The translations under genes were made by a program, and so were the position numbers. Shown here in pieces: positions 3,486 to 63,234 of a DNA stretch of 64,000 nucleotides. Within the stretch, counting starts at the first letter, position 1, and every line of letters begins with the position of its first letter. The notes beneath the pieces were generated by a model. That model saw only the letters and a list, made by a program, of their open reading frames with translations, was not told the origin of the DNA and searched no databases. The stretch comes from Hydrolagus colliei (taxonomy: Eukaryota), in NCBI GenBank assembly GCA_035084275.1, contig CM068769.1:434001-498000 (forward strand). Reading direction: 5' to 3'.

Positions 3486-5061
3486 TCACCAAACTAACTT
3501 AACAATATTACGAAACGGGTACCTCACCATATTCTTCAACTGTTGTCTGAATTTAGATTGAGTCAAAGCGTAAACACACGTATTTGTGGAACAACTGAAA
3601 AGTCGAAGTATATCTCCCACAGGTAAAAGTTCGCCAAAGTAGTTTCCTAAACCTAAAAAATACGTAATTACATAATTAAGATTTGTGGCTACATAAGTCA
3701 CCCACATTAGCACAAAACTCCCAGATACAACAAATAGTAAAACAATGAATTTTCTCCGACTCTCCATCTCTGGATCAATGTGATTCTCCCCAGGTCTGTG
3801 AGCTCTGAGTCTTCTGCGGGATTTACTGCTGACCAAAATGTGTCTGACTGTCACAGCATTGAGCAGCAAAACGATGACAAATGGGAGGTTTGGGGTTAAT
3901 ACATATAGAAATATCTTAAATGCTGTCCATATAGAGGATTTATAGTAAGTTAATTTAACGACACAAAACCAAGGTTTGTTGTTAAAGATGAAGAGCGGTT
4001 CAAACTCCAGGCACAGAGGACTGTATAGCGCACAGCTCAGCACAGAGATGGTTCCCAGAACCACAGCCGCCGATCTCTGGGTGCAATGTGTTGACTTCAA
4101 TTTCTGATGACAAATGGCCACATGTCGGTCAAAGGTGAAAGCCACTGTGAACCAGACAGAACACGCTGAGTTCACATACAGCAGCGCCTCGTGGAGAAGG
4201 CAGATCGGGGTGAAAAGCAAAACATTAAACTTTGGGAGATACAGATCACCTACACGGTTCAGTATCACATCAAATATCACCACCGTCAGATCTGCCCCCG
4301 CCATGGCCACCAGGTAGCGAGTGATGCACGTGGAGAGACCGCACTTTCCTCGCCAGAGGATCACAATCGTCACCAGGTTAACTGCAAACAAAACACACGA
4401 AATATTCGAGAAACTGACGGTAAACGTCAACAACAGAATCGTCAACATCAACACCTGCAGTTGTACAGCCTCCCTGACCCAGGGTATCGCGCTGTAGAAT
4501 TTGTCGGTGGCAGAAAACCACATCCAGGTGCCAGGTGATGACGGATCGAGGGAGTTTGGGAGAATTCGGAAACTAATGCTATTGACAACAGGGATTCTGG
4601 AGAGCTTGTTTAGAACTGATGTAGTGAAGCGAACATATAGTGCTCTGGAATGCTCTGCATGAGGTGGGCTCTATAACTGCAAGCTGTTCTGCATAAACTC
4701 CCTGAAAAGCCCTGTATGTTCTAATACTGGTTTTCCCGTGATACGAAGGAATAAATTAATTGACAATTTGTATGTTTTTGCTTGGTTGTCATATCAAATA
4801 ATGAAATGTTTTGATTAAGCGCACTCTGTTGCGTGTAGCCAACTATGACAATTTCTATTTAACCAATACATGCTAAATAAGATGGCACAAATACCATGAG
4901 AGTGGAAACATAAGATACATATCAAAATCAAATATGTATTGAAACGTTGACTTACGTGAAGTAACAAGTTATGAGGACTTACCAGGAACACCGATAACTG
5001 CAATAATTGGATAGTATATCAGTTCTATCTGATTCACTATTAAAATAAAAGCGTATGACAT
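3486..5061 (-). CDS. GPR139-like class A GPCR, 2 exons, 324 aa
   Basis: Exon 1 is 5061-4983 (MSYAFILIVNQIELIYYPIIAVIGVP+G, donor gtaagt). A 601-nt intron ends ttttgtttgcag. Exon 2 is 4381-3486. The total is 975 nt, in frame. It has seven hydrophobic segments, AMAGADL in TM2, a DRY-equivalent FDRHVAIC and TNTCVY in TM7. The first 47 aa of the tracked ORF are intronic. Confidence 0.9.
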
Positions 5062-17322: not shown

Positions 17323-17659
17323 TGTTTGTTGTCAATGTGCGAAACACTTCTCATTGTAATCCTACGAACTAAAGCGATTCCCGTGATTATAACTTCGAAA
17401 CGTTGACTATAAGGTCACAAATGTACATTCACCAGGAAATAGTTAGATATTAGGAACAGAAGAGGAAATCCAAAATTCCGTAGAAGAGGCAGGTCAAACT
17501 TAAGGAATGGGTAGTCTTAGTGTATAGTTTGGGACACCACATGTGTAGCGTCTGCCAGAATTGTGGCTGGCGAACTAATGTACCCTCAGTGCTGTCCACG
17601 TGTCTGAGCCACGTGGACAGTACTGAGGGTACATTAGTGTTTATATACACACACAATCA

Positions 17660-19097
17660 ATCAATCAATCAATCAGTGAGTACACAGAACACATACCAAT
17701 AAGTATACACACGCAATCAGTGAGTAAACACACGCACACATACAATGGGTATATACACACACAATCAGTGAGTACACAAACACACATACCAGTGAGTATA
17801 TACACACACAATCAGTGAGCACACAAACACACATACCAGTGAGTATATACACAATCAGTGAGTACCCACACACACCAGTGAGTATACACACACAATCAGT
17901 GACTACCCACACACACCAGTGAGTAAACACACACAATCACTGAGTATATACCGTAAATACCCGCGTATAAGGCACACTCGTATATAAGGCGCACCCCCCA
18001 CTTTTGACCTTTTATTGGTGAAAAAAAACGGAAGCATTTTCAATGATATTGCCGGCAGAAGGGAGGGAGGGAGGGAGGAGAGACAGGTAGGTAGGGAGCG
18101 AGGGAGCAGGAGAGACAGGGAGGGAGGGAGGAAGGCAGGAGGGACAGGGAAGGAGGGAGTTAGGCAGGAGAGACAGGGAGGGAGGGAGGCAGGAGAGACA
18201 GGTAGGGAGGGAGGGAGGGAGGGAGGGAGGGAGGGAGGCAGGCAGGCAGGGAGGGAGAGAGGGAGGCAGGCACGGAGGGAGAGAGGGAGNNNNNNNNNNN
18301 NNNNNNNNNNNNNNNNNNNNNNNNNNNNNNNNNNNNNNNNNNNNNNNNNNNNNNNNNNNNNNNNNNNNNNNNNNNNNNNNNNNNNNNNNNNNNNNNNNNN
18401 NNNNNNNNNNNNNNNNNNNNNNNNNNNNNNNNNNNNNNNNNNNNNNNNNNNNNNNNNNNNNNNNNNNNNNNNNNNNNNNNNNNNNNGAGGGAGGCAGGCA
18501 AGCAGGGAGGGAGAGAGGCAGGCAGGGAGGGAGGGAGGCTGGCAGGCAAGGAGAGAGGGAGGGAGGTAGGCAGGGAGGGAGAGAGGCAGGCAGGGAGGGA
18601 GAGAGGCAGGCAGGGAGAGAGGCAGGCAGGGAGAGAGGCAGGCAGGGAGAGAGGGAGGCAGCCAGGGAGGGAGGGAGGCAGACTGGGTTAGGCAGAAGGC
18701 AGGCAGCAGGCACGGTATTGAAGTCCACTGCTGCTGCCACTGCCCGGGCGGCCGAGGCCGAAGCCCCACCACCCACTCCCCCCAACCCCCGCCAGACACA
18801 GTGTCCAAACCCCGGATGACAGTGCGCTGGCCGCCCCTCCTCATTTCCGAGGCTCAAAATTTCTTGTACCTGCGTATAGGGTGCACCACCAACTTTCGAG
18901 ATCTTCCAACGTGCAAAAAAGTGTGCCTTATAACACGGGTATTTACGGTACACACACAATCAGTGAGTACACAAACACACAAACCAATGAGTATACACAC
19001 ACAATCAGTGAGTGCACACACAAATACATACCAGTGAGTGTATATATACACACATAATCAGTGAGTACACACAACACATACAGTTGAGTACTCACAC
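17660..19097. repeat. CACACAATCAGTGAGTA-type minisatellite, interrupted by a transposon
   Basis: Repeated ATCAGTGAGTA/ACCAGTGAGTA units at 17660-17950 and 18950-19097, resuming at 19722-19770. Confidence 0.8.
17951..18948. mobile_element. Tc1/mariner superfamily (Tc2/pogo-like) non-autonomous element, TA TSD
   Basis: The left end CCGTAAATACCCGCGTATAAGGCACAC matches the reverse complement of the right end, CCGTAAATACCCGTGTTATAAGGCACAC. TA flanks both ends. The interior is GGGA/GGCA low-complexity sequence plus an N gap. Confidence 0.8.
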
Positions 19098-19771: not shown

Positions 19772-20545
19772 TAGGGTCCGTCGATATGGAAATTTTCCGA
19801 TATCAATATATCGGTTTGCCCATATCGACATGCACCGATATATCGATATAAACACAGATATGTTAATTTATATATCGATATAGCTATTATTTTTTTGTCT
19901 TGCGCAGTGCGCGCATATCGTTCCTGGCAATATATCAATATTGTTGGTATTATCAGTGTAATGCGATCTTTTCCAGCTTACCTTGTCGCCGGCATTGCAA
20001 CCTCCTAGACCTAGAGCATGGAATGCGCGTACATTCGGTGCGCGCGCACAATTAACGGGTGCGCACTTCCGATGCGCACGCACACTTTACTGTGTATACT
20101 CGACGTGAGTCGTGGCGTCTTAACAAAGTCGCATCGCTGAAAATTGTAGTTTGAAAATTTACCTTTCTCATCATGGGGAAAAGAAGCCCCGTATGGGACT
20201 ACTTTGAAAACAATGCAGTCAGTAATGGTGTGTATAGGTGTGCAGTTTGCAAGGTCTTGGTTAAGACATCTGATTCGAGTACGAGCAACCTGCGACAACA
20301 CATTAAGCAGCACCACCCCGCCCAGCACGCTGCCCTCAGAGCGAAATTATTGTCGACAACAGCAGGAAGTCGAACCAGCGCTTCGGAGAAAGCGACAGGT
20401 AGTGGGGCCAGTGCAGCTCAAACAATTCCTGCTTTATTTAAGAGGAGAATATTGTACCAGAGAGGGGACAAAAAGTGGCAAAGTATCACGAACGCTGTCA
20501 CTTTTTGCATAGCAAAGGAGAGCTTGCCAATGGCGAAGGACATTA
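19772..20545 (+). mobile_element. hAT transposon left end with a truncated BED-finger transposase
   Basis: Has the same TAGGGTCCGTCGAT TIR as the MITEs. The ORF from 20173 reads MGKRSPVWDYF...YRCAVCKVLVK...STSNLRQHIKQHH (zf-BED). It breaks off near AVTFCIAKESLPM, and no right TIR was found. Confidence 0.85.
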
Positions 20546-21589
20546 ATTCAGACTTCAGACTACATAAAAATAAGTGGCATTTTGTGGCTGAAAGTGTTAT
20601 TTTTGTGTGTGAGAGAGTTAGAAGCCAGATTATCACTGTTTCTATGTGTGTGTCTGACTAGACACACACATAGAAGCAGTGATAATCTGGCTTCTAACTC
20701 TAACAGTCAGACTGTCTGTCTCTCTCTTTTCTATTGTAATAGATCTCATTTACACGTGGACATTACATGCTAGTTTCAAGCAAGAAATGGAGGAGAATAA
20801 ATCTCTAGATTTTGTTTTTGGTGTGTGTGTGTTCTATTTTGTGTTTAGAGATGGAGGGAGAGAAGGAGAGGGGGAAAGTTGGGAGAGAAGGAGAGAGGAA
20901 GAGAGGAGAGGGAGGGAGAGAATGAGAGGGGGAAAGGAGGAAGAGAAGGAGCGAGGGGAAAGGAGGGAGAGAAGGAGAGAGGAAGAGAGGAGAGGGAGGG
21001 AGGGAGAGAAGGAGAGGGGGAAAGGAGGGAGAGAAGGAGCGAGGGGAAAGGAGGGAGAGAAGGAGAGAGGGGAGGGAGGCAGAGGGGGAAAGTTGGGAGA
21101 GAAGGAGAGAGGAAGAGAGGAGAGGGAGGGAGAGAAGGAGAGGGGGAAAGGAGGGAGAGAAGGAGCGAGGGGAAAGGAGGNNNNNNNNNNNNNNNNNNNN
21201 NNNNNNNNNNNNNNNNNNNNNNNNNNNNNNNNNNNNNNNNNNNNNNNNNNNNNNNNNNNNNNNNNNNNNNNNNNNNNNNNNNNNNNNNNNNNNNNNNNNN
21301 NNNNNNNNNNNNNNNNNNNNNNNNNNNNNNNNNNNNGGGAGAGTGGAGGGGGAGGGAGAGAAGGAGAGGGGAAGCCCTGGATATACTGTGGACCTGCCTG
21401 GCTCCGGAAGCGGGGACTAGAGACTGTTAACACGACACTGGGGTCTGTACTCACTGTCTCTGTGTGTGAGGTGGGGGCCACTCCACTGGTAAATATTCCC
21501 CGTCCCCCGAACTCATCCTTCAGCAGCTCCAACAGCTTGGACGCTGCCCCACAGAAGCCGTCCTGCAGGTCACACAGCAGGTGGAAGCC

Positions 21590-21974
21590 CTGCCAGACAC
21601 ACAGTCACATTATAATACTCTGTGGGCTGGATCTCCTGCCAGAGAGACGCACACATACACACACACACACACACAGTCACATTATAATACTCTGTGGGCT
21701 GGATCTCCTGCCAGAGAGAGAGAGACACACACACACAGTCACCTTATAATACTGTGTGGGCTGGATCTCCTGCTAGAGAGAGAGAGAGAGAGACACACAC
21801 ACACACAGCCACACACACACACACAGTCACATTATAATACTGTGTGGGCTGGATCTCCTGCCAGAGAGAGAGAGACACACACACACATTCACACACATAC
21901 ACAGTCACATTATAATACTCTGTGGGCTGGATCTCCTGCCAGAGAGAGACAGACACACACACACACACACACAG

Positions 21975-22007
<33 letters not shown>

Positions 22008-22110
22008 CACATTATAATACTCTGTGGGCTGCATCTCCTGCCAGAGAGAGAGACACACACACACACAGTCACATACACACATAGTCACAGGTATAATAAT
22101 CAGTGGGCTG
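21590..22110. repeat. Intronic minisatellite, about 7 units
   Basis: Core unit CAGTCACATTATAATACTCTGTGGGCTGGATCTCCTGCCAGAGAG, separated by variable (GA)n(CA)n. Confidence 0.9.
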
Positions 22111-22495: not shown

Positions 22496-24361
22496 AAGTG
22501 GGCCCCAGCGAAGGTTTGTCTACCTGCAGGTAATCACATTCCTCCACGTAGAAGTGAAGCCGATCTTCAGTCATCCAGAAAAGCAGGATCTTGGATCAGC
22601 CTCTCCCCCTGGCCAAAGGCTTCGAAGCGTTCAGTCTCTGCCAAAAAAACACAGGCTTTTCACCACAATAATATATAATATCACACCTTATCATGATATA
22701 CACCTTAGCATGTGGCTGAGATGCCTCAAAGTGGTGCAAGGTATACAGTTTGTGCAGCGATGTCCCCACAGAGAGCCGTGATGTGGGCAGGCGAGCGGGA
22801 GAGAGAGAAACTCCCTGCTCTTTTCCAAAAGAGCCGTGAGTGAGAATCTTTCTGGGAGATCTGTCTGTCAGTTTGACATTTTACCCGAGGGCAGTGACTC
22901 TGACTATACAGGGCTCCCCCCAGCACTGCACTAGACAAGCAGCACAGAGTGTGTGTGTGTGTGTAGTGTGGGAGGGAGGGAGGAATTGGTCTGAAGGAAG
23001 GAGGGTTGTGACACACTGAGCTGTGTACAGTGCTAACTCACCCCTCATGGTTGTACTGATGGACAACACTAACAGTCTTTGGGTGTAAGTGAACTCGCAG
23101 GTAGTCAGACCACACGATGACACTGTCCTCTAACTGATAGCTTCTCTGTGACAAGTCCACTCTCTGAGGCCCGGCTCCTGGGGAGACAAAGCAAGGTTAC
23201 TCCAGACCCTCACACACTGTGTAACCTCAAGATGGGCTGCTCCACATACCCGCCCATCCCAGCTCCACCATGAGCCCCTCTACCCTGATCGTTTGGAACA
23301 CCATCCCGATCACTCAACCTCGCCCTTTCCCTTGCCTCCTTCAAGGCGTGTCTCAAGATCCTGCTATTCGACCGTGCCTTTGGTCACCCTCCTAACCCCA
23401 CCTTCCACTCCTCCTAACCCAGCCCCCAGCTCGGGTTCAAATCTCTGTTTGTCCAGCGCCTCAGGACGTCCTGATGTGAAAAGCGCAGTGCAAAATGTAA
23501 CTTGTTGTTGTCACTCACTTTGCTCTGTCCGAAATGGTCTGCTGTTCAGGTTCTTGTATGTGTGTGGTTGGCTCTGTCGGACACACAGACACAATGAGGC
23601 AGGTAACGAGTGCACAAATGTCAAAATAAACTCTTGCGCCACCGAGCGCCCACAAATTATAGAGTGTCCCTGAAGCCCTTTGAGATACGCTAGATTATTA
23701 TTATCACTGTGGGTATTATTATATGATTATTATATTATCACTGGGATTAAGGGATATGGGGATGAGGCGGGTGGGCAGCTGGAGTTAGATTAGAAGATCA
23801 GCCATGATCTTGTTGAATGGTGGGGTGGGCTGGAGGGGCTGAATGGCCTACGCCTGCTCCTTATTTCTATGTTGTGTGGTTATTATTGTTGTTTTATTAC
23901 TGTGGTTATGATGATAATAATAATCCTTGCATTTGATATATAGTAAGTAATCCTTAAGTTTATACAGCGCTTTCCACGACTTATCGACGTCCCAAAGCGC
24001 TTCACAGAATTTGGTTGGGGAAGGAAAGTAGGAAAATTAACTGTATATTTGTGGGCGAAAGGCGGCAGCCAAATTGCGCACAGCATCGTCCCACAAACAG
24101 TCGTGAAAATAGGGCCAGGGGAGAAAGGAGGAAAAGGGGAGAGGAAGACGAAGGTGGGGAACAATAGATAGGAAAAGGGAGGGGGGTAAGGGAGAGAGGG
24201 GGGCAAGAGGGAAGAGAGAGAGAAAGGGAAAAGTGGGGAGAGAAAGTAGCGAAAGGGAGTAAGGGAAGAAGAGGCGGGGGGGGGGGGAAATCAAACAACA
24301 ACAATAAACAAAATCAACAATAAACAACAAAAGCAACAATGTTAACAAAACAACAACAATC

Positions 24362-24678: not shown

Positions 24679-26379
24679 TCATTATGTATTATTGTGATTA
24701 TTATATAATAAAATAATCCTTGCAGATTGTCCAGACTGAAAGCGCTCTGAGACGCCGTCTGGCGTGGAGGACACTATATATATCGAAGTTGTTGTAGACT
24801 GTGTCCCAAAGCGCTTCACGGAATATACTGTCAGGTGAGTTGACGGTATATTTGTGGATGGCAAAAACATATTGTTGTTATTCATTGTTCATTATTATTG
24901 TTGTGGTATCATTATTAGAAACCAGAGACTGCGGTACACTCCCGGCAGCTCAGGGCAACACCTTCAGCACGCTTCCTTACCACACACACACACACGTACA
25001 GACTTACTCACACACACTCAATCACACACATACAGACGCACACACACATACACACTCACTCACACACACATACGTTCATACACACACACACACTCACACA
25101 CAGACACACACACTCACATTCACACACACACAGACACACACGTCTGATAATAATCCCTCAAAATAAAACACCAACAACCTCAGGAAAGCAGACAGTGTCG
25201 TGGCCGAGAATGCCACAGATACAATTGTGTGTTGAGAGCCGTGGCTGTCTGCAGGACGTTGCTGTACAGATCAGCTGTCGTGTCAAACACAAACACAAAG
25301 ACCACGGCAGTAAATGGGCTACTCACATCACGTCTGTCCAGATCACGCAGGAATTGGTTCTTCTGGACTGGCTCTTCCTCGTGCACTGAAACGCCCCCCT
25401 CCCTGGCAGGACAAAGAGATACACCGTGTGTGTGAGAGCGAGAGAGAGAGAGAGAGGGAGAGAGAGAGAGAGACCGCCCTTACGTTCACAAACCTACAGC
25501 TGCATCATCTCACCCACCTGCCCGCTCCCCACCTCCGCTCAGTGGGCTCTGGCTGCTCCACCAGGCCCAGTCCGTCCCACCATCAACGCTCGGGCTTTCC
25601 TCCTCTCTGCCCCCACCCTCTGGAACTCCATCCAGCAGTCCCCTCTCCCCCCCTCCCTCCTTCCCTCCCTCATCTCCTTCAAAGCTCGACTCCAGACCCT
25701 CGACGTGGCAGGTGATTTACCAGTGTATGTTGTTGTTGTTGTTGTTTCTTTGCATTAGCTTTCTATTCCTGTCACTGATCCCCACCCACCCACCCACCCA
25801 CACACACACACACAGAGAAGTGTGAGATGTGCCCACAGGGCTTACCATGTCACCGTGGGCTCTGTCTGCCTCCCCTCGTATAACACTCCCTCCTGCTTCA
25901 GACTGTTCAGACTTCCTGAAACACATACACCAGTTACCACAGGTCAGGGTTACACACACAGTAAAGCCCCCTCTACACTGTGTGTCTGTCCGTCCACACT
26001 CCCAGCTCAGGGTTAGAGACACAGAAAAGCTCCCTCTACACTGTGTGTCCACACTCCCAGGTCAGGGTTAGAGGTGAGAGGGCTCCAGGCTGAGCTGTAC
26101 CTCTGAGGTCCAGGAGAATGAGGCGAGGTGTGTACGTGTTGTGGCCAAGCCGGGGTCTGTCCCTCTCGGAATAGAACATGGCGACTGATCTCACACTGAG
26201 GGTCTTCAGCTGCTCCTCACAGCCCAGGTCAGAGTCCTGCACACGAGACACACACACAGTGTTCACTGCTCTGTCCATGTCACCAACACCTCCCCCCCTC
26301 ACTGCCCAACTCCCGGCCAGCTCCCCTCCCCACCCACAACACTGCATAACACACACCCCTCCCCGCAACACCTTCCTCC

Positions 26380-27050: not shown

Positions 27051-27168
27051 TTCATTTTCCTCCCGCTCCCCCACAGCCTCTGACCTGAATGTTCCACCAA
27101 TGGGAGCCCACGAAGTTGCTGCAATGGCCGAGCTGCAGAGTCAGCAGCTCCCGCCACACACTGACCAT

Positions 27169-30882: not shown

Positions 30883-33800
30883 TCAGAGGAAGCTGCAGAC
30901 TCGATCCATCATTCCTGGATTGTAGTTACACAAGAAAAGCAGCTCCTGTTTCCCCTCCTCTGTGTGAGCTGTGGGCGCGAGGAAAGGCAGTCAGAGAATT
31001 AGTCTGTGAGGAGGCGGAATGAATCCCAACAATCCCAGCTATCTGCACTGTACAATAGTATTACACAAGGCTTCTCTGATTGTGGTTTTCAAAGTTCGGA
31101 GAGACTTTGGATCAAGTAAATGGGGGGGAAAGTACTGACTGGTGTCAAAAGGACTAGAGACAAGGAGTAAATAACTTTGTCCCCCAACCCCACACTAATC
31201 CCTCCCTCCGTACCTTTCTCATGCTGGATCCACTTGCGTTCCACATAGTACTGATAGCAGCTTTCAAACTCCTTCTCACTGTAATTCCCAACTTCAATTG
31301 GAACAAAAGGGTCCAAAGTATCAAAGCCTTCCTGCAGAGGTTACAGTGTGTTGCGGGGAGAGAAAGGAGAGAGATACAGGGGAACAGTGTCAATCATGAG
31401 CAGAAGATGCAACAGAAACAAAATACATGTGCAGTGTGTTTCATGTCCGGAGGACATCTCAAGACGCTGAAGTTAGTGTATGGTCCCAAACCGGATGGCA
31501 GGGAGGGTGACCAAAGTCAGAGTCAAAGAGGAGGGTCTTGAGACGTATCTTGAGGGAGGCGAGGCAGAGGAACTGTGGGATGGAGGGAGGCGAGGCAGAG
31601 CAACTGGGGGATGGAGGGAGTGAGGCAGAGGGATTGTGGGATGGAGGGAATGAGGCAGAGGAACTATGGTATGTAGGTGATGAGGCAGAGGGCCTCCAGG
31701 ATGGAGTTCCAAAGTGTAGGGCGCAGGGATGGAACTGTGCCAAGCGATGAAGAACAGGGACCTGATGAGATGTAGCGCAGTGATGAGATGTAACAACATT
31801 GCCAGGCTCCGCAACTATCTTACCCCCCGCGCTGCCGAAACACTCGTGCACGCATACATCACCTCACGGCTGGACTACGGAAACTCTCCTCGTCGGCCTC
31901 CCCAGTTCCTCCATTCATAGGCTGCAGGTCATCCAAAACTCTGCAGCCCGTGTACTATCCTGCACTCGTCTCCGCGTCCACATAACCCCCACCCTCGCCC
32001 GTCTCCACTGGCTCCCCATCCTCCAGAGGATCGAGTTCAAGATCCTCGTCCTCACCTACAAGGCCTTACACGGCCTTGCCCCCCCTATTTAACCGATGTA
32101 CTTTCCACCTACACGCCCACCCGGACCCTCCGTTCAACAGGACTTGGCCTGCTCCAAGCCCCCCGCCCGAACCGCCCCACCATCGGAGGCCGGGCCTTCA
32201 GTTTCTCCGCTCCCACCCTATGGAATGCCATCCCTCAATCCCTCCGTTTCGTTTCTTCCCTTTCCTCTTTCAAGGCCGGTTTGAAGACTTTCCTCTTCGA
32301 TCGTGCCTTTTGTTCCACCCCGAACTCTTTTACCTCCCCTTCGTGTTTCACCCCTTCCCAAACACTCCCCTCCCAGCTCGGGTCACACGCTTCATGTGCA
32401 GCGCCTTGGGATGTCCTCCCGACGTGAAAGGCGCTCTATAAATGTAATTTGTTGTTGTTGTGTTGTGACTGGCTCCATGGCAGTACTGATTCCCGATGTG
32501 TGAAAGCGGCTGGATTTGCAACAACGACCCTTAGGCCTCCCTCTGCGAGTGAGTAGCTGGGCTCTCAGGGAGGTTTGGGAGGAGCTTCAGTCAATCCGGG
32601 CACAGAATGCTCACCTTTCTAAGCAGATGGTGGGGTAGATGAGACAAGTGGGAGGAACCCAATGCCCCAGTCTTGGTCAGTGTCATCACCACAGCTCCAG
32701 CACACTGCAGCAGGTAACACACGGGTTAGAATAGAATAATAAGCCTTACATTTGACGCACCACATTATCACTTTCAAACGTCTCAATGCGCTTCACAGTA
32801 AAGTGATTTGACTGTATGTTTTATGTGCAGACACTAGGGTCCGTCGATTTGGAAATTTTCCGATTAAATATATCGATGGGCTCATATCGAGATATACCGA
32901 AATATCGATATTTTCGGGTTTTTCGTACTGCGCATTCCGGGTGCGCACGCATTTGCGGCCGATCTCCTCAGGACGTAAATATCTTTCTCTCTCTGTGTGT
33001 CTCACTCTCTTCATCTCTGTGTTTTTCTGTCTTTGTGTCTCTCTCCCTCTCTCCTCTCTCACATTCCCCCCCATCTCTATCTATCTGTATATTATCACAT
33101 CCACCCCGTCTCTACCCCGCCCCCGCCGTCCCTCTCTCGCACCCCCCACCCCCGTCGTCTCTCTCCCCCACCATCCCCCAGCCGTCTCTTTCTCCCTCCC
33201 CCCCACACCGTCTCTCTCCCTCCCCCCCCCAGCCGACTCTCTCCCCCACCAGCCGTCTCTCTCCCCTGAGCCGTCTCTCTCCCCCTTCCCCGAGCCGTCT
33301 CTCTCCCCCTTCCCCCAGCCGTCTCTCTCCCCCACTCCCCAGCCATCTCTCTCCCCCTCCCCCCAGCCGTCTCTCTCCCCCTCCCACCAGTCGTCTATCT
33401 CCCCCTCTCCCCCTCCTCCAGCCGTCTCTCTCCCCCTCAACCGCCACCCCCAGCTGTCTCTCCCCCCGCCCCTCCCCACCGCTTGCATACCTGTATATTG
33501 TATTCGAGGACTATGAATACAATTTGGCGGCTTTGCACCTCGTCTGTGCATTGTGTATAGAGATGAGCATTCTGGGTCTTGTAGTTCAGTGTGCTCGCAT
33601 CCGGATTGTTTACCTCGATATATCGATGTTGCGATATATCGATATTTTAAAAATGTTTACATCGGCATATCGATTTGAAAATTATATCGGGTTTTAGCGA
33701 TATATCGATACATCGCCGGACCCTAGCAGACACACAATGCGCCAAAATGATGTGGACACATGCATACCTACATGCGTACATACACACCACACACACATAT

Positions 33801-36800
33801 TCACGTACACACACAGAGCATTGGTGCAGGGAGTGTGTGGTGCTGTAGGGAGAGGCTACTCTCTCAGACTCTCACCCAGTCATTGTTCACCAGCTTCTTC
33901 AAATTGTGCATCAGAGTCAGCTCGTGTGGAAATATCTGTGAAAAGAGAGCATCCTGAAACTGGGGAAGGGGGGGAAGGCCATCAGAGAGCATTCAGAGGT
34001 TCAGGATGGAGTGGCTGCCACTGATGGTGGAATTTAGAGCACGAGGGACAAGTCAGATGAGTGGACGTAGTGGGTTGGGTGAGTAAGCAGGTCGAAGAGG
34101 TGGAGAGATGCTAGGGCATGAAAAGATTTCAAAATGAGGGAGATGATCTTGAAATAGATCCGTTTGATGATAGAGTTTAGTGTGTAATAGGGACGCAGGG
34201 GAGCCTGGCGAGGGCTGGGGTGATGGAGAGGGAGAGAGTTTAGGAGCCGGGGGAGCCAGGCGAAGGCTGGAACAAGAATGGGAATCAGGAATGTGAGGCA
34301 ATACCTGGCTCCTATCCTCCTTCCTCATGGTGGTGGGTCCCCAGAGGGCATTGGCCCCGTCGATGGCCACCAGCAGGCGGTAGGTGTCTGGCGAACTCTG
34401 TCCCTTCAGCTCCTTGAACAGGACTCCGACTGCATCACTCGCACTCTTTACCCTCGTCAGTCCCTGCAGGGAGAAGTCAGCTCAACCACAACACACGCAG
34501 ACACACAAACAATAACTCAATCATCTCACCCTCCTGGCACCAGTGAAGGCATCTACGAATGCACTTTATCTGACACTAAGAACATCAAAACATCTCAAAC
34601 TGCGTTCAAGGGAATTGCTGTCATCAGGGGGACTTTTCTTTTGAAATAAGCGAATGCAGCAACCCGCTGTGAGTTGAATGAGCAATTTATTTAGGGGATT
34701 TTCAGTCAGGATACACAGAGAGAGAGAGAGAGAGAGAAACACCCTTCTATTTACTGACAGCACCTTGCGAGATCATTTAACGTCTGACAGGGAGCGAGGT
34801 GTAACATCTCATCTAAAGGACCAAGCCTCCCCCAATAAGGCTCTCTCTCCCACCAGCGTCAGCCTAGACTCCCCATGCGGTTCGGATGATTCAGTGTGAA
34901 ACCCCTCATCCAGTTACCTGTTCCACCACTTCACCGAGCGGCCTCCCCTCCTCCGTTGCCTCCCGCTTGCTCCAGATGTACCTTTGCCGGGTTTTTATCT
35001 GTTCAGATAAAACTTGAATTAGATGTTGCTTCAGTTGCTTCAACGAGATGTTCAATCGTGGAGAAGTTATTAATTCCCTGTTAATTTAGAAGCTGTTGTA
35101 AAATGATAAGAATGGATACGAAGGACGTCCCACCAATCCGGAGTCCTGAAACAGGCCTAAAAGGAGTCAGGAGACTGTGGGCTGGAGGTGTGACACGTAG
35201 GGTCATGGCTACTGGACAAAAACTATTTTGTTATTACCTCCTTTAAGAAGCGCTCATTTGTAATCTTGAAATTCTTGAGCCAGACGGAGGCCTCAATGGG
35301 CTGGTCAAATCGAGCTGGATTGTAGGCCGACTGGAGCAGCTCTTTACGGCTTTTCACCCATATGTAAGCTGTCACATGGGGAAAAATACAAGACAATTAC
35401 TGATACTGAGCCTCACCCTTGTTTTCAAATCCTTCCACTCCTCTGCAACCCCCTACCTCTCTAACCTCCTCTCTCCTCAAAGCAGCTCCCATTGACTTCT
35501 CTCCACTGGGTCTGGCCTCCTCCATGTCCCCGAATTGTCCACTCTACCCTCGGTGGCCGTGCCTTAAGCCACTATGCCCCAAAGCTCTGGAATTCCCTTC
35601 GTCAGTACCGTCGCCTCGTCCCCTCTTTTCTCAGTTTCAGGTCCCAGCTGAAGACCTTTCTCTTCGACCGCGCCTTTGGTCACCTTTCTACCCCTACTCC
35701 TGGCTCGGTCCTGGGATCCACTATTGTGAAGCGCTCTTAGACGCCGTCCAGCATAGAGGGCACTGTATAAATCAAAGTTGTTGTGGCTGTTGCTCAGCTA
35801 CACAAACAGTAGCAATCTCATGAGTCCCCCATCAATCCATATCGATGGTTTTAGCTGGTGTAGAGTTATAGAGCTTAGACATACAGCCAGCAAATCTCAT
35901 CAACTTGGAAAAAAGATGGAGCCAAGGACAACTTCCTTGTCTGACATTGTTGTTCGTGCTACCAGAGACACACACAGCTTTATAGCACCAGTGGGTGGCC
36001 GTGTACAGCAACATACGCCCATTCTCAATCATGTCCTGAAACACCAAGAGTAATGACTGCCCTCGCGCCCACCAGCCCAAACCCTCTCCCCATTGCTGCC
36101 ATCCTCTGGACAACGACACAAATCCAATCCAATAACATTGGCTGTAACTCACCATCTGGGACATGGAGAATAAGCCAGTCCTGCTTGGAACAGTAATGAA
36201 CAGTGTTGCAGAGTGTGAGTGTTTTCCCACAGCCTCTCTCACCATCTGAAAGCCGAGAGGTCAAGGAAAGGACCTGGGACATTGAGCTACATTGATGGAT
36301 TCCACCTTACACAGCGTTCCGTGTGGAGTAAGGAAATGCTTTGCCGGGAATCGCACACAGTTTGGAAGTGAAAAGGATACAGATGAGGTAGCGGATGGCA
36401 GGGTACGAAAAATTGGTCGCTTTCAAATAACTGACGAGCTCCAGTGCTGGCTGCCTGACCATCAAACATGCCTCTCCAAACGTCTTCACCTGCAACACAA
36501 CAGAGAGAATCACATACCTCCTTCACGCCTGTCTGAAGCAGAGAGAAGCAAGCACACACTGAGACATAGAAGGCACGTTATATCAGATACACCAGCAGTG
36601 TGAAATAGGGAGACGCACACACACACACAGGAGTGAGACAGAGAAAGGTGTGTATGGTAAAACAGAGAAGCGTTTACAGCGAGAGACAAGAGAGGATAGT
36701 CACAGAGAGACAGATAGGATACACACAGCATCAGATACCTGCCTCAGTAACAGTCTAAAACAGAGACACACACACACCAACAACAACAACAATAAATTAC

Positions 36801-37539
36801 ACTTCTGGAGCGCCTTTCACGTCGGGAGGACGTCCCAAGGCGCTGCACAAGAGGCGTGTGACCCGAGCTGGGAGGGGAGTGTTTGGTGAAACCAGAGATA
36901 GAGACACACATCACACACACACGATAGCGAGAGAGGCAATGCACTGGACATTGTGGCTGTACCTGTAGCTGGAAGCGACGTGGCAGGCCGTGAGGGAAGG
37001 TAGATTTGAGGTCACTGGGTGGGATGGTGTAGTGCAGCCCCTCGTGGAGTGGCTGGTGATTTGCCTGCGAATAAACCCCGCGTTACACTATCATTTAACA
37101 CTGTCACTGCACAGCGGAGCTTTCCAACCCAGAGATACACACGGTGCAGGGCGTGTCACGTGTTTTGTACGTGTGCTTGTTGGCATTGTGTGTGGTGTGT
37201 ATGTGTGTTGTGCGCGCGTGACTTACAGGATCTGTTTGGCTGGTCCTGAACACAGCTCTGGGAGTTTCTGTGGCTGTGTCCCTCTGCACCGCGGCATGCG
37301 CCTCCCACAAGCGGGGGCTGCAGTGAAGAAGACGGGCACGGCAGGCCTGGGGGCAAACAGCAAACAAGAACATTGCCTTTGCAAACAGCCGCAGGATCTT
37401 TAACAGGCGCTTGAGCAGGTAAGGAACACACGTCCTCCCAACGTGAATACGCAGTGTCAATGTTACATTGGATAATTCGCACAGGACTCACCGTTGTAGC
37501 AAACTTGGCCATTTTCCTCAGACTGTCCAGCGGCATCAT
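30883..37539 (-). CDS. DAP3: Death-associated protein 3 / mitochondrial ribosomal protein mS29, 398 aa, intact
   Basis: Coding exons: 37539-37492, 37346-37227, 37064-36963, 36489-36381, 36245-36153, 35368-35238, 34998-34918, 34463-34305, 33935-33876, 32704-32615, 31331-31214, 30968-30883. These sum to 1197 nt, all GT-AG and in phase. Motifs include [17 protein letters not shown], Walker [49 protein letters not shown] and [11 protein letters not shown]. Confidence 0.96.
31790..32465 (+). mobile_element. L2 LINE 3' fragment in a DAP3 intron
   Basis: [45 protein letters not shown], the family 3' end and a (TTG)n tail. Confidence 0.85.
32835..33725. mobile_element. hAT MITE (same family as 19098-19721), 8-bp TSD GCAGACAC
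   Basis: Runs TAGGGTCCGTCGAT...ATCGCCGGACCCTA. GCAGACAC is at 32827-32834 and 33726-33733. The internal C-rich minisatellite is expanded relative to the other copy. Confidence 0.9.
35400..35790 (+). mobile_element. L2 LINE 3' fragment
   Basis: [19 protein letters not shown] and [15 protein letters not shown] motifs. Confidence 0.75.
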
Positions 37540-38499: not shown

Positions 38500-41400
38500 C
38501 TCTCTCTCTGACACACAGGGCGAGGGAGACACACACACATACACATACAGGCCTCTGTCACACACAACTAGACATTTACACACTCACAACAACATTTCAA
38601 TTCCCCCCCCAACCCTCTAACAAACACATAGGGAAACACACACAGGCAGACACACACACACAGGGAGACACACACACACCACACAGAGACATACACAAAC
38701 ACACAGGGAGACGCATACACACACACAGGGAGACACACACACACACACATAGGGAGACATACACACACACACACATAGGGAGACATACACACACACAGGG
38801 AGACACACACACACATAAACACACACAGGGAGACACACACACACACAAAGGGGACACACACACACATAAGGACACACACACAGGGACACACACACACAGG
38901 GAGACACACACACATAGGGAGACATACACACACAGGGAGACACACACACACACATAGACACACACAGGGAGACACACACACACACACAGGGAGACACACA
39001 CACACATAAGGACACAAACACACACAGGGAGACACACACACACAAAAACACACACAGGGAGACACACACACACACAAAGGGGACACACACACACATAAGG
39101 ACACACACACAGGGACACACACACACAGGGAGACACACACACATAGGGAGACATACACACACAGGGAGACACACACACACACAGACACACACAGGGAGAC
39201 ACACACACACACACAGGGAGACACACACACACATAAGGACACAAACACACAGGGAGACACACACACACAGGGAGACACACACACAGGGAGACATACACAC
39301 ACAGGGAGACACACACACACACACACACACACACAGGGAGACACACACATAAACACACACAGGGAGACACACACAGGGAGACACACGCACACATAAGGAC
39401 ACAAACACACACAGGGAGACAAACACACACACAGGGAGACACACACACACACAGGGAGACACACACACACACAGGGAGACACACACCCACATAAGGACAC
39501 ACACACACACAGGGAGACACACACACACACACAGGGAGACACACAAAAACACACAGGGAGACACACACACACAGGGAGACCCCCACACACACACACAGGG
39601 AGACACACACACACATAAGGACACAAACACACACAGGGAGACACACACACACACAGGGAGACACACACACACACACAGGGAGACACACACCCACATAAGG
39701 ACACACACACACAGAGAGACACACACACAGGGAGACACACACACACAGGGAGACACACACACACACACATAAACACACACAGGGAGACACACACACACAG
39801 GGAGACAAACACACACACAGGGAGACACACACACACACAGGGAGACACACATACACACAGGGAGACACACACACAGGGAGACACACACACACACACACAT
39901 AAACACACACACAGGGAGACACACACACACACAGGGAGACACACACCCACATAAGGACACACACACACAGGGAGACACACACACACAGGGAGACACACAC
40001 NNNNNNNNNNNNNNNNNNNNNNNNNNNNNNNNNNNNNNNNNNNNNNNNNNNNNNNNNNNNNNNNNNNNNNNNNNNNNNNNNNNNNNNNNNNNNNNNNNNN
40101 NNNNNNNNNNNNNNNNNNNNNNNNNNNNNNNNNNNNNNNNNNNNNNNNNNNNNNNNNNNNNNNNNNNNNNNNNNNGAGACACACACACACAAGGAGACGC
40201 ACACACACACAGGGAGACAAACACACACACACACACACAGGGAGACACACACCCACATAAGGACACACACACACAGGGAGACACACATACACACAGGGAG
40301 ACACACACACAGGGAGACACACACACACACATAAACACACACACAGGGAGACACACACACACACAGGGAGACACACACACACAGGGAGACACACACACAC
40401 ACATAAACACACACAGGGAGACACACACACAGGGAGACACACACCCACATAAGGACACACACACACACAGGGAGACACACATATACACAGGGAGACACAC
40501 ACACACACAGGGAGACACACACACACAGGGAGAGACACACACGCACACACAGGGAGACACACACACACACACAGGGAGACACACACACACAGGGAGACAC
40601 ACACACAGGGAGACACACACACACACACAGGGAGACACACACACACACACACAGGGAGACACACACATACAGGGAGACACACACACACACACAGGGAGAC
40701 ACACACCCACATAAGGACACACACACACACAGGGAGACACAGGGAGACACNNNNNNNNNNNNNNNNNNNNNNNNNNNNNNNNNNNNNNNNNNNNNNNNNN
40801 NNNNNNNNNNNNNNNNNNNNNNNNNNNNNNNNNNNNNNNNNNNNNNNNNNNNNNNNNNNNNNNNNNNNNNNNNNNNNNNNNNNNNNNNNNNNNNNNNNNN
40901 NNNNNNNNNNNNNNNNNNNNNNNNNNNNNNNNNNACACAGGGAGACACCCACACCCACATAAGGACACACACACACACAGGGAGACNNNNNNNNNNNNNN
41001 NNNNNNNNNNNNNNNNNNNNNNNNNNNNNNNNNNNNNNNNNNNNNNNNNNNNNNNNNNNNNNNNNNNNNNNNNNNNNNNNNNNNNNNNNNNNNNNNNNNN
41101 NNNNNNNNNNNNNNNNNNNNNNNNNNNCACACAGGGAGACACACACACAGGGACACACACACACACAGGGAGACACACACACACACATAAACACACACAG
41201 GGAGACACACACACACACAGGGAGACACACGCACACATAAGTACACAAACACACACAGGGAGACAAACACACACACAGGGAGACACACACATACAGGGAG
41301 ACACACACACACACATAAACACACACAGGGAGACACACATACACACAGGGAGACACGCACACACACGGAGACACACACACACACAGGGAGACACACGCAC

Positions 41401-42200
41401 ACATAAGTACACAAACACACACAGGGAGACAAACACACACACAGGGAGACACACACACACACACATAAACACACACAGGGAGACACCCACCCACACAGGG
41501 AGACACACATACACACAGGGAGACACGCACACACACGGAGACACACACACACACAGGGAGACACACACACACAGGGAGACACACACACACAGGGAGAGAC
41601 ACACACACAGGGAGACACACACACACAGGGAGACACACACACACACACACACACACACAGGGAGACACCCACCCACATAAGGACACACACACACACAGGG
41701 AGACACACACACACACACACAGGGAGACACACACACACACAGGGGGAGACACACACACACAGGGAGACACACACACACAGGGAGACACACACACACAGGG
41801 AGACACACACACACACACACACACAGGGAGACACACACCCACACACACACACAGGGAGACACACACCCACATAAGGACACACATACACACACATAAACAC
41901 ACACAGGGAGACACACACACACAGGGAGACAAACACACACACACACACACACAGGGAGAGACACACACATAAACACACACAGGGAGACACACACACAGGG
42001 AGACACACACATAAACACACACACAGGGAGACACACACACAGGGAGACACACACCCACATAAGGACACACACACAGGGAGACACTCACACACACAGGGAG
42101 ACACACATATAGGAAGACAAATACACACAGGGAGACACACAGGTCTCTGTCTCTCACACACACACAGGTCTCTGTCTCTCACACACACACAGACAAACCT
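38500..42200. repeat. About 3.7 kb (CA)n-AGGGAGA compound minisatellite in DAP3 intron 1
   Basis: CACACAGGGAGACACAC units with recurring ATAAGGAC/ATAAAC variants and three N gaps. It is the source of the spurious 1100-1200 aa Val/Cys ORFs. Confidence 0.95.
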
Positions 42201-42245
42201 CACGCAGTTTCCCGCCCACACAGACTGTGTGTATCCATCTCTCAC

Positions 42246-42600
42246 CTTCTCTCTCTTTGTCTCCGCCATCATGGACGCATTGTCTGCAACGTCACCACGT
42301 CAACCCTCTAGTACATCCCGCCCTCCCGTGACGTCAGCACGTCAACACTCGACTGGCTCCCGCCACGCGATGACGTCAGCTAGTCTCCTCTGTCTTCCTC
42401 TGAGAAGGACAGAAGCGCCTCCATGGCAACCAGTGATTGACAGGAGAGGAAGAGAGACACGCCCATCTTCTCCCTGGTCACACATGATTGACAGGAGAGG
42501 GAGAGAGACACGCCTACCTTCTCCATGGTTACAAATGATTTACAGGAGAGAGAGAGACATGCCCACCTTCTCATTAGTACCAAATGATTGACAGGAGAGA
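42246..42600 (-). promoter_or_regulatory. Probable DAP3 first (5' UTR) exon and CpG promoter
   Basis: Donor AAG|gtgaga at 42246/42245, a YY1-like CCGCCATC at 42263-42270, a GC box at about 42317, two CRE palindromes TGACGTCA (42329-42336, 42371-42378), and four TGATT(G/T)ACAG decamers. Confidence 0.65.
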
Positions 42601-53942: not shown

Positions 53943-56900
53943 TTTCAACAACAACAACAACTTAAACTTATAAAGCGCCTTTCACGTCGGGAGGACGTCC
54001 CAAGGCGCTGCACAGGAGGCGTGTGAACCGAGCTGGGAGAGGGGTGTTCGGGAAGAGGTGAGACACGTAGGGGAGGTCGAAAAATTCGGGGGGGCACAAA
54101 AGGCACGGTCGAAGAGGAAAGTCGTCAAACCGGCCTTGAAAGAGGAAAGGGAAGAAACGAAACGGAGGGATTGAGGGATGGAATTCCATAAGGTGGAAGA
54201 GGAAAAACTGAATGCCCGGCCTCCGATGCTGGGGCGGTTCGGGCGGGGGGGTTGGAGCAGGCCAAGTCCTGCTGAACGGAGGGTCCGGGTGGGCTTGTAG
54301 GGGGAGAGTAGATTGGTTCAGTAGGGCCGGGCAAGGCCATGTACGACCTTGAAGGTGAGGACGAGGATCTTGAATTCGATCCTCTGGACGATGGGGAGCC
54401 AGTGGAGACGGGCGAGGGTGGTTGTTATATGGTCGCCGAGGCGGGTGCGGGATAATACACGGGCTACAGAGTTTTGGATGACGTGCAGCCTATGAATGGA
54501 GGAGCTGGGGAGGCCGACGAGGAGAGATTTTCCGTAGTTCAGCCTTGAGGTGATGTACGCGTGCACGAGTGATTCGGCAGCGTGGGGCGTAAGATAATTG
54601 CGGAGCCTGCCAATATTGCGCAGGTGGAAATAAGCGACTGAGGCAGACAGGTACAACTGGGTGTCGTCCGCATACATGTGGAAATTTACCCCATGTTTGC
54701 GGATGACATCGCTCAGAGGGAGCGTATAAATGGTGAAAAGGAGGGGGCCGAGGACAGAGCCCTGAGGGACGCCGTGAGAAACTGTGCGGGGGTTTGAGGA
54801 AAAATCATTGGAAGAAACAAAGTGTAAACGGTGGGTCAAATAAGAATGCAACCAGTGCCTTGAAGGTTGAGGTGGGAGGAAAGACGTTGGAGGAGGATGG
54901 TGTGATCGACTGTGTCGAACGCAGCACACAGGTCAAGGAGGACGAGGATGCAAAGGGAGCCCTGTTCACAGGCGGTTAGGATATCATTTGTAACGTTAAC
55001 TAGGGCAGTTTCTGTGTTGTGAATAGGGCGGAAGCCTGATTGGAGGGGTTCAAGGATTGAGTGAGTTGAAAGGAAAGAGCGGAGCTGGGAGGCAACCACT
55101 CTTTCAAGGACCTTGCATAAAAAGGCGAGGTTGGAGATGGGTCGATAGCTTGATGGTTGCGACGCATCAAGGGAGGGTTTCTTCAGGATAGGGGTGATGG
55201 TGGCTGTTTTAAGGGAGGTAGTGACGGAGACTGCGGAGAGGGAAAGTTTGATGGTGTCAGAAATGAGCGGGGCCAAAAGGTGGAGCTGGGTGTGGAGGAG
55301 GGGGGTGGGAATGGGTTCCAATGAGCACGTGGTGGGTTTCATGTAGGTGATTATTTTTGTGATTGAAGACGGGGTAGTGTGGTTGAAAGTATGAAATGGG
55401 GGGTGGGAGGGTGTTGAGGTAACGGATGGAGGGGCGGAGGTGGAGGAGAGGTGGGGGGAGGAAACCGCGGAGCAGATTTTCTCTATTTTGGACACGAGGA
55501 AGTCCAACATCTCCTCACAACATCTCCTCACCCCATGCTCCGGGTTTGAGGAGAGGATCTGCGAAGCGAAACGGGGGGGCGGAGGAGCTGGTTGGTGGTG
55601 GTGAAGAGGAGGCGGTGGTTGTCCTTCGCTTCCAGGCTTATCCTGGAATAGAAGGCTGATTTGGCGGTGGCTAGGGCGGAGCTGTAAAATCTGATGCAGT
55701 CCAGCCAGATTTGCCGGTGGACCTTGATGCCAGATTTGAGCCAGGTGCGTTCAGCTGCTCTCACTTGGCTTTTGAGGGAGCGGAGATGAGTTGTGTACCA
55801 CGGTGATGATCGGGAGTGGGAGACGGTTCTGGAGGTGATGCGGGCTAGGGTGTCGAGGATAGTGGAGAGGGAGTTGTGGAGGGCGGTGGAGGCGGAGGAT
55901 GGGTCGGTGCAAAAAGAGTGCCACTGTGGGAGGAGGTCGTAGGTTTCGAGCGCAGAGGTGAAATGAAAGTGGGGGAGGGTTTGGGGGGGGCGATGAACTA
56001 ATAGGATTTTGAAGGAGTTGTGGGAGGAGTGAGAGAGGTGAACTTTTCTAAAGAGGGGAAAAAACCGGAGGAGTAGAGGGATAGGGCGAGGGATGATTTT
56101 GAAATGAGGGCCACACCACCGCCTCGACGGTTGGGTCGAGGGGCATGGTGGAATTTGTAATTCGGTGGTGTTGCTTCTACGAGTGGGAAAGTGTCGCCTA
56201 GAGTAATCCCGGTCTCCGTCAGGGCCATGATGTCAACGTTCTCATCGAGGATGAGATCGTTGATGGCCTGGGTCTTGTTGCAGACAGAACGGACATTTTG
56301 GAGGCTGATATTAAAAAAGCATTTAGCCGAGGGGTGAGAGGGGGGGCTGGGATGGTCGGCGGGGCGGGTGGGGATCTGGATAAGGGAGGCGAGTTTGACC
56401 CCCCGGGTTTATGTCCTTTGGGGCTGGCGGTGATGGTGGGGGACAGGGCACTTGGGGTGGCTGCTGTTGGACAGCCAGCGCCGAGTGCCACGGTGAGCCC
56501 GACGGAGGATTCCGAAACTGGAACAAAGGGAAGCGGTGGGAAGGTCGAGCAGGGACAGTAGTCGAGGAGGGCGAAGAGAAAGAAGGGTAGAGAAGGAATA
56601 ACGGATTGGGGGGAAAGAATTGAGGAGGGGAGGGAAGCTCGGGTCATGGCGGCAGCTATATTGCGCACGCGGGAGACCACGAGCGAGGGATCATTGCGGC
56701 GGCATCATCCAAAGCGATGTGAGGCCGTGACAGGGGGATGCAGAGGCGCTGCAGTCTGGAGCATGGCCGGGACTGAGGACGAAGCTGGGGCTGTGGGTTT
56801 CAGGGCCGGTTGCCGGGGCTGCGTGGGCCCGGGCCATGGGTCGACGGATCAAGGCTGGAGCCGGGACCGGGGTAGAGAATCTCGGGGCTGTGTGTCTTGA

Positions 56901-57225: not shown

Positions 57226-57870
57226 AAAAGCTGCAGCATCAAGCCAGTTTGCCAAATAATGTACCAAGGATCACTGCAGCCTGAGAAATTTATTGACTTT
57301 CTCCGGTACAAGAAAAATAAATCATATGTCATCCATAATACTGCGATATTTTCCTGCTATCGCAAACAGTAAAATAATGGCTTTCCTTTGGTTCTTCATC
57401 CCTGGATCACTGTCTCCCTCACCTCTATTCCTGTCCCCATCACTGTGTCCCCGCAATCTCCTGCGGGCTCGACTGGCCACCAGGATGTGCCTGACAGTCA
57501 AGGGGTTGAGCAGCAAAATCCCAACGAATGGGAGAATTGGGGTTAAAACAAGGTCGAGGTGGTCATACACATTCCATGGGATAAACGAGTAAACGCTTGC
57601 TTTGGTCACGCAAATCCACGATGTGCTGTTAAATATGAACTCTGGTTCATAGTCAAAGTACCAGGGAATATTTACCCCAATGAAGAACACACTGAGCCCC
57701 GCTATCACTGCAGCAGCTGTTTTTTCAGTGCAATATTTAGTTTTCAGTTGTTGGCTGCAAGCCTTAATGCATATTAAGGCTTGCAGCCAACAACACTTGC
57801 CGGGAAAACCAAATGCAGCGAGAATCGGGTGGTAAATGTCTTCTATTCTGTGAATAATCGGAGTTGTCAT
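57226..57870 (-). pseudogene. GPR139-like GPCR pseudogene with internal deletion, frameshifts and 3' truncation
   Basis: The exon-1 peptide MTTPIIHRIEDIYHPILAAFGFP (57870-57801) is fused through a hairpin to TM4-TM6 (CSQQLKTKYCTEKTAA...LTPILPF.GILLLNPLTVRHILVASRARRRLR). Frameshifted LWMTY and LYRRKSINFSGCSDPWYIIWQTGLMLQLL follow, and homology stops in TM7. Confidence 0.88.
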
Positions 57871-58123
57871 CTTCAAATCGGAAAATATTATGTCTTCTCT
57901 CGGCAGAGGAAGCAGCTGACGGCTGAAAGATGATGCTAGAAAGTCTCAAACGGATTCTTATATAAACCAACAGTGATCGCTTTGTTGAGCCATGTTACCA
58001 CGGGGTCGTCGATGAATTTGAGCCGCATGCAAAACAGTTACTCAACCTGTGTAATGTCATTTCCCTCAAGGATTTAATTTTTGGGGGGCAGCCCATTGTT
58101 TCAACATTGCTGAATCATTGTGA

Positions 58124-62555: not shown

Positions 62556-62899
62556 TGTTTCTCTCTCCCATAAATACACAGTAAAATTACTTGACAATGT
62601 ATTCTGTGAAGCGCTTTGAATCGCTTAGAGTAGACGTGAAAAGCGATATAGCGAATGCAAGTATTATTATCATTACTGCTGTTATTATCCACATGTCTTA
62701 ATTCTAACAAACATGTATCACAATCTTCTATCGGTTGATTAATAAAAACATATAATACAGAGATAGTGATGCATTTCTTTTTCTTTAATTGTCTTGATAT
62801 GAAGTAAATAAAGTGTAAGCTGTGGGGACAGTTAGCTTATGGTTTGTTACATGGTGTCTCACTGCTCTTTACTGATTCCCAGCGTTTGGTTGTGATGAG

Positions 62900-62938
62900 G
62901 GTTATTGTACGAGGCTTCCTATGATGTGTATCACTGTG
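62900..62938 (-). other. V(D)J recombination signal sequence, 23-bp spacer
   Basis: CACAGTG (62938-62932), then the 23-nt spacer ATACACATCATAGGAAGCCTCGT, then ACAATAACC (62908-62900), which is one mismatch from ACAAAAACC. Confidence 0.93.
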
Positions 62939-63234
62939 GTGCAGACTGACTACACAGTGATACATAGCGGAGTCTGGTAGCTGCAGGCTGGCGATGGTGA
63001 AATGGCTGATTTTTTTGGCAGTGTCAAGAGAAGCAGAAATATGATCTCCAGTGGGGTTTCCTCCCTCTCCCAAAGGGCTTCTGTGGAGAAGGTATATCGG
63101 TGCCTCACCAGGGAACTGACAGTACCAGGAGACAATTAAATCCTGTCCACAGAATCCTGAGTATTGGCATTGTAAATCCACTCTCCCTCCAGCAATAGCC
63201 TTTATTTCAGGCGGTGACTGAGTAATTATCGATC
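62939..63234 (-). CDS. Germline TCR alpha/delta-type V gene segment, resembling the NAR-TCR supporting V-delta
   Basis: Acceptor cacgtag|GA, then an open Ig V domain: SIITQSPPEIKAIAGGRVDLQCQYSGFCGQDLIVSWYCQFPGEAPIYLLHR...ISASLDTAKKISHFTIASLQLPDSAMYHCVVSL. It has the canonical C-W-C, an extra CDR1 Cys, and is followed directly by an RSS. Confidence 0.85.

Follow-up and report, generated by a model that had tools for sequence, protein, structure and literature searches.

Cancelling indels in exon 2 of MSTO1 and the probable recent inactivation of the gene copy next to DAP3

The 64,000-nt stretch of DNA analyzed here (the window) carries the 5' exons of MSTO1 beside DAP3, whose last ten exons are intact. 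Exon 2 of this copy has lost one base and gained another, and its reading frame stays open. The pair is present in the assembled sequence and is derived. An earlier reading of the same DNA (the initial annotation) had offered a choice between a compensatory frameshift allele and two offsetting consensus errors, but a third reading is better supported, that of a copy without constraint, with at least four disabling indels. The copy is probably a recently inactivated, non-processed pseudogene at the orthologous DAP3-MSTO1 locus. The two indels of exon 2 would then be two of at least four slippage-type frameshifting indels in a copy freed of constraint, and their cancelling would most simply be a coincidence. 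There is a point of method in this: before a pair of frameshifts that preserves an ORF is called compensatory, the whole gene and a neighboring control gene should be weighed alongside it.

The MSTO1 copy and its neighbors

Exons 1 through 8 of MSTO1 are recognizable in the window (slashes mark exon boundaries):

27168..27085, minus strand: exon 1, ATG at 27168, 28 residues, intact, donor CAG/gtcaga, 90.5% nucleotide identity to Callorhinchus milii
26236..26101, minus strand: exon 2, 136 nt, acceptor gtgcag/GAC, donor AGAG/gtacag
25915..25846, minus strand: exon 3, intact
25402..25327, minus strand: exon 4, intact
23573..23519, minus strand: exon 5, of the length found in C. milii, poorly conserved (72.7% nucleotide identity)
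23177..23042, minus strand: exon 6, with an in-frame 3-nt deletion relative to C. milii
22637..22524, minus strand: exon 7, 114 nt as against 118 nt in C. milii and Hemiscyllium
21589..21455, minus strand: exon 8, well conserved (90.4% nucleotide identity to C. milii), out of frame from the ATG

In these exons the ATG is intact, as are all 15 splice sites, and introns 1 through 7 are present and homologous to the introns of C. milii. Nucleotide identity to C. milii is 90-93% in exons 1, 3, 4, 6, 7, and 8, as against 78.5% in exon 2 and 72.7% in exon 5. The gene is indeed MSTO1, as the initial annotation had proposed, and the human N-terminal sequence given there agrees with a human database fragment (P0006). 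When exons 1-3 were compared with 1.84 billion representative proteins, 399 matches were obtained, among which MSTO1/misato spans fungi to mammals; the best was a misato fragment from C. milii (P0001; E 1.4e-33, 69% identity). Spliced exons 1-4 score 102.8 bits (E 1.8e-29) against PF10644, the Misato segment II tubulin-like domain.

Two other open genes serve for comparison with MSTO1:

37064..30883, minus strand: DAP3, last 10 exons, 342 codons plus stop, the upstream neighbor of MSTO1
3486-4523, minus strand: rhodopsin-family GPCR ORF, intronless, 345 aa, 1038 nt, intact, matching PF00001 at 72 bits

The 1029 coding nucleotides of DAP3 form an open reading frame with no indel, the exon lengths equal those of C. 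milii, and the AG/GT sites are conserved. An exact database look-up of the GPCR ORF gave no match. The window is collinear with the C. milii contig (L001) from DAP3 through MSTO1 exon 8. Genes are ordered DAP3, MSTO1, endosulfine in C. milii and DAP3, MSTO1, GON4L-like in Hemiscyllium (L002), and by this order the MSTO1 copy, which follows DAP3 on the same strand, is in the orthologous position. Synteny shows the DAP3-MSTO1 locus to be the orthologous one, in a holocephalan other than C. milii. Of the relatives found, C. milii is by far the closest, and a dS of about 0.3-0.4 between the two exceeds what a congener would show. The MSTO1 of C. milii (XP_042202100.1, P0162) is accordingly the ortholog, with exons 1-8 and the flanking DAP3 in common, but it is intact (581 aa in 14 exons, over 11.7 kb), whereas the copy in the window has four frameshifts and a stop and is without exons 9-12 and 14.

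One further match to the C. milii contig, between positions 5-212 of the window and the flank of endosulfine, was considered and set aside. It is probably associated with a repeat rather than a sign of synteny, because the adjoining segment of the contig (L001 ~25946-26083) matches many places in the window.

Repeats are found within the introns of MSTO1 as well. A satellite of about 54 nt in intron 2 (25940-26073) is common to C. milii, which has long arrays of it in introns 2 and 9 (L001 13355-14182 and 18525-18963). In a tandem array at 21597-22081, with a period of 62-102, the 3' end of intron 7 is repeated along with its acceptor-like CTGGCAG; the corresponding unit is present as a single copy in C. 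milii (L001 17584-17619).

A pair of cancelling indels in exon 2

The initial annotation had described exon 2 as 136 nt long and in frame at both ends, and so it is, by its splice sites and by the phases of its neighbors: exon 1 ends in phase 0, and exon 3 continues in frame 0. Frame 0 of the exon is fully open over 45 residues, the length also of its C. milii equivalent. The exons 2 of C. milii and Hemiscyllium ocellatum are 136 nt each and align with one another without a gap. Relative to both of them, the window sequence, and it only, has one base missing and one C extra:

26204/26203, minus strand: 1-nt deletion, AAGAC here and AAGGAC in C. milii (pairwise alignment)
26155-26152, minus strand: CCCC run with a 1-nt insertion, CCC in C. 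milii and C-C in Hemiscyllium
26203-26153, minus strand: 17 out-of-frame codons, novel in frame 0, the ancestral peptide in the -1 frame

The nucleotide alignment with chondrichthyan MSTO1 that had been recommended thus places both indels, and close to where they had been expected. A base had been thought lost within exon nt 18-33 and is missing near exon nt 33; another had been thought gained near the CCCC run at about 26153, where the extra C lies; and the estimate of about 17-20 rewritten residues comes to 17 codons. The position of the deletion depends somewhat on method, as MAFFT sets it 13 nt further upstream, at 26217/26216. The placement at 26204/26203 is preferred, because frame 0 then matches C. 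milii up to that point. The shifted frame is closed upstream, as had also been claimed: the alternative frame from 26234, with its 30-residue peptide, has TGA codons at 26231-26229 and 26219-26217.

Which of the two frames is ancestral? Read in the -1 frame, the 17 codons give a peptide with 13-14 of 17 residues identical to C. milii. The same block is kept in C. milii, eight elasmobranchs, and bony vertebrates, and it is found in all the full-length MSTO1 proteins compared (from C. milii, six sharks and rays, lungfish, bichir, and coelacanth). This excludes the possibility, allowed for in the initial annotation, that the frame-0 peptide is the ancestral state. Also, in a profile HMM built from MSTO1 of 12 gnathostome species, the -1-frame piece of exon 2 matches positions 38-57, whereas the frame-0 ORF matches only positions 54-75. 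The score of exon 2 against PF10644 is 14.2 bits in the frame 0 of the window, compared with 39.9 bits in C. milii; the -1-frame piece by itself fell short of the Pfam filters.

What frame 0 removes is a conserved motif, VLFREG. Of 225 near-full-length Misato proteins, 158 contain a motif of this type by pattern search, and it stands exactly 13 residues ahead of T[FY]xPR in 142 of 144 proteins. In the window the two motifs lie in different frames, separated by 13 codons plus 1 nt. The stretch still follows its old frame, since its differences from C. milii, taken in the -1 frame, amount to 4 synonymous and 6 non-synonymous changes.

The open frame between the two indels might be thought to speak for selection. 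However, 17 shifted codons would be free of stops with a chance of about 0.44, so an open stretch readily arises by chance and is no evidence of selection. Two small indels, for their part, would cancel at random in roughly one case out of three. Taken together, these figures mean that the compensation needs no selective explanation.

Further lesions in exon 7

The initial annotation held that the reading frame of the gene is preserved. That is correct inside exon 2 but not beyond it, where exon 7 carries two 2-nt deletions and a TGA and the 3' exons are undetectable. The deletions of exon 7, absent from the initial annotation, lie at ~22634/22633 (CTCT to CT) and ~22569 (TTT to T), both leave the string GACTGAA, and their net effect of -4 is uncompensated. 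The first of the two deletions creates an early stop:

22633-22631, minus strand: premature TGA, second codon of exon 7 and codon 189, in the spliced frame GG/A GAC TGA (exon 6 ends GG)

Exon 8 is out of frame because of the net -4 in exon 7. No acceptors or donors that would rescue the frame of exon 7 were found, and the ORF of the MSTO1 copy is thus interrupted. Its transcript would encode about 188 residues, with the conserved segment beginning CEIS replaced, and translation would stop at codon 2 of exon 7. A database search with the spliced 187-residue product returned fragments from C. milii and Pristiophorus only.

All four frameshifting indels occur in short repetitive contexts (GG to G, CCC to CCCC, CTCT to CT, and TTT to T). 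If indels arose at a uniform rate, the chance that all four would fall in MSTO1 (806 nt) is 0.037, or 0.006 when the GPCR ORF is counted as well.

The missing 3' half

The remainder of the gene was sought in several ways. A tblastn search of the window with C. milii MSTO1 matched residues 1-271 only. The 12-species MSTO1 HMM, run against all six frames of the whole window, found nothing past profile position 276 on either strand. With a human MSTO1 sequence as a locator, exons 1-8 were located in the window and the C-terminal half was not. Exons 9-12 and 14 were undetectable in the window by tblastn, blastn, HMM, and per-exon Smith-Waterman alignment judged against shuffled controls. By the last of these methods, exon 13 alone beats the null, with a score of 27 as against a maximum of 14, and maps to 17637-17586. 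What is left there is a stub:

17715..17574, minus strand: exon 13 stub with the intron 12/exon 13 junction, matching L001 20818-20943 at 69% identity
17574-17638: 65-nt palindrome with 32-nt arms (17574-17605 and 17607-17638) that are 94% complementary

About 20 nt of exon 13 remain, and then an inverted copy of the same sequence follows. The palindrome so formed could be the scar of a rearrangement or a fold-back artefact. The C-terminal Tubulin_3 domain (PF14881, exons 9-14) was not found in the window, and this half of the protein would not be encodable at the locus.

At the other end of the break, homology to intron 8 of C. milii stops about 12 nt past exon 8 and gives way to a GA-rich array of 25-nt tandem repeats that holds an N run (21181-21336). 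Further arrays surround the N run at 18290-18486; indeed, all N runs of the window lie within tandem or low-complexity repeats. The DNA that stands in place of intron 8 and the 3' exons also contains, at 20173-20661 on the plus strand, an ORF for a BED zinc finger (PF02892), which is probably a remnant of a hAT/ZBED transposon.

Constraint and its loss

When exons 1-8, read in the ancestral frame, are compared with C. milii by the Nei-Gojobori method, dN is 0.081, dS 0.375, and dN/dS 0.217; the values for DAP3 are 0.028, 0.294, and 0.095. Replacements unique to one lineage were counted wherever one of the two holocephalans shares its residue with 6 or more of 8 elasmobranch outgroups, and by this count MSTO1 has undergone 12 in the window and 1 in C. 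milii (p = 0.0034). The excess is weaker, 15 versus 6, with Hemiscyllium as the sole outgroup. With the same outgroup, the DAP3 control (166 sites) gives 2 replacements in the window and 3 in C. milii. Constraint on MSTO1 has thus been relaxed on this lineage.

The relaxation need not be old. Of the 100 differences between the two MSTO1 sequences, 56 are at third positions. This excess, together with the intact ATG and splice sites, argues that most of the divergence accumulated under purifying selection and that, measured against the split from Callorhinchus, constraint was lost recently. By a rough estimate, if ~15-25% of the branch were neutral, one would expect ~26-38 neutral substitutions and 3-4 indels in 806 nt. 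Five indel events are seen in the exons of MSTO1 (the four frameshifts and the in-frame deletion in exon 6), near the number of indels expected.

Discussion

Disabling mutations (four frameshifting indels and a premature stop) in a gene that keeps its intron-exon structure, combined with relaxed constraint, are what one would look for in a non-processed pseudogene, and the copy of MSTO1 next to DAP3 probably is one. We infer that its lesions are present in the germline and did not arise in assembly, and that a functional copy of MSTO1 exists elsewhere in the genome. The fly gene misato is one whose loss is lethal. MSTO1 has been reported as a human disease gene (PMC6851037, PMC10405053). The loss of the syntenic copy therefore calls for a second copy.

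Some observations count against a pseudogene: the break in homology past exon 8 adjoins the N run at 21181-21336, and each of the four indels lies in a short homopolymer or dinucleotide repeat, a context prone to consensus errors too. They would fit with a local artefact of assembly or consensus, in which the gene is intact in the animal, the indels are errors, and the 3' exons were lost in a gap or a misjoin. A scaffold misjoin at that N run could be the source of the missing exons, the 65-nt palindrome at the exon 13 stub could be a fold-back product of assembly, and MSTO1 is a gene one would expect to be indispensable. However, errors in the consensus would have to have spared DAP3, only 3-10 kb away, as well as the 1038-nt GPCR ORF. 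Indel errors cannot explain the excess of amino-acid replacements either, an excess that DAP3 does not share. Also, about 3 kb of contiguous sequence free of N on each side of the gaps is without exons 9-12 or 14. An artefact is on balance unlikely, yet it retains some weight, given that every one of the four indels falls in a short repeat and that homology breaks off right beside a gap.

Less probable still is that the sole MSTO1 copy of the lineage is decaying, with no functional copy elsewhere. The copy does lie at the ancestral position next to DAP3, the HMM detected no other MSTO1-like sequence in the 64-kb window, and no MSTO1 protein from a holocephalan other than Callorhinchus was found in the protein databases searched. 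However, 64 kb is a small part of a genome to survey, and absence from the databases may reflect missing data for the species. Moreover, the gene persists from fungi to mammals (in the 399 representative matches), and its loss causes human disease (PMC6851037). Were such a loss true, it would mean that a vertebrate manages mitochondrial distribution and fusion without misato.

Compensated frameshifts are known in functional genes, and the pair in exon 2 resembles them in that a short peptide is rewritten between a closely spaced insertion and deletion, which together restore the frame. Those that have been accepted, however, lie in tolerant regions with the rest of the ORF intact, whereas here one of the best conserved motifs of the domain is hit and further, uncompensated lesions follow. 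That MSTO1 is a functional gene in which 17 residues of Misato segment II were rewritten by a genuine compensated frameshift, fixed or segregating and tolerated, is very improbable: the unchanged length of exon 2 (-1 + 1, with 17 open codons between), the intact splice sites, and the ATG are what it would predict, but it has to contend with the removal of a motif of nearly invariant spacing, the fall in the PF10644 score from 39.9 to 14.2 bits, differences that still follow the old frame, an open stretch readily obtained by chance, a state absent from C. milii and elasmobranchs, and a coding sequence otherwise broken by the -4 shift and stop of exon 7 and the lack of a Tubulin_3 half.

If the copy is a pseudogene, it has a counterpart in humans. 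The human pseudogene MSTO2P presumably lies directly downstream of DAP3. MSTO2P is non-coding, contains introns, keeps the 5' exons of MSTO1, and is located 133 kb from it (PMC10405053). Its 5' region is 99.8% identical to that of an intact MSTO1, with which it coexists, and the size of its interval, ~2.8 kb, suggests a 5'-partial copy as in the window (PMC10405053). It is the closest analogue of the copy described here, likewise non-processed, with introns kept and 5' exons retained in the neighborhood of MSTO1. The two differ in that MSTO2P is a young duplicate beside an intact gene, whereas the copy in the window occupies the orthologous site adjacent to DAP3 and no intact MSTO1 is seen within the 64 kb. 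A search of the literature on pseudogenes of and frameshifts in MSTO1 returned human clinical papers only.

There is nothing unusual in the kind of locus this is (a pseudogene, or perhaps an artefact), but it matters how it is annotated. Modelling it as an MSTO1 that is intact but divergent at the N-terminus should be avoided, and a gene predictor that accepts the open frame of exon 2 would emit a chimeric or truncated protein. If the lesions are true, the misato gene that a chimaera has at the conserved DAP3-MSTO1 position was inactivated recently. This would imply either that the functional copy has been relocated (compare the human pair MSTO1 and MSTO2P) or that a mitochondrial disease gene has, surprisingly, been lost.

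Other features of the window

A second GPCR ORF is related to the one described above:

57322-57876, minus strand: related truncated GPCR ORF

The C. milii and Hemiscyllium loci compared here have neither of the two at the equivalent place. The upstream part of the DAP3 gene region contains a TG/CA-rich microsatellite of about 3.7 kb (38568-42272) with three N runs and spurious ORFs of more than 1100 aa. Fragments of a LINE reverse transcriptase lie at 54318-55531 on the minus strand, and an ORF with an immunoglobulin V-set domain lies on the same strand at 62837-63292.
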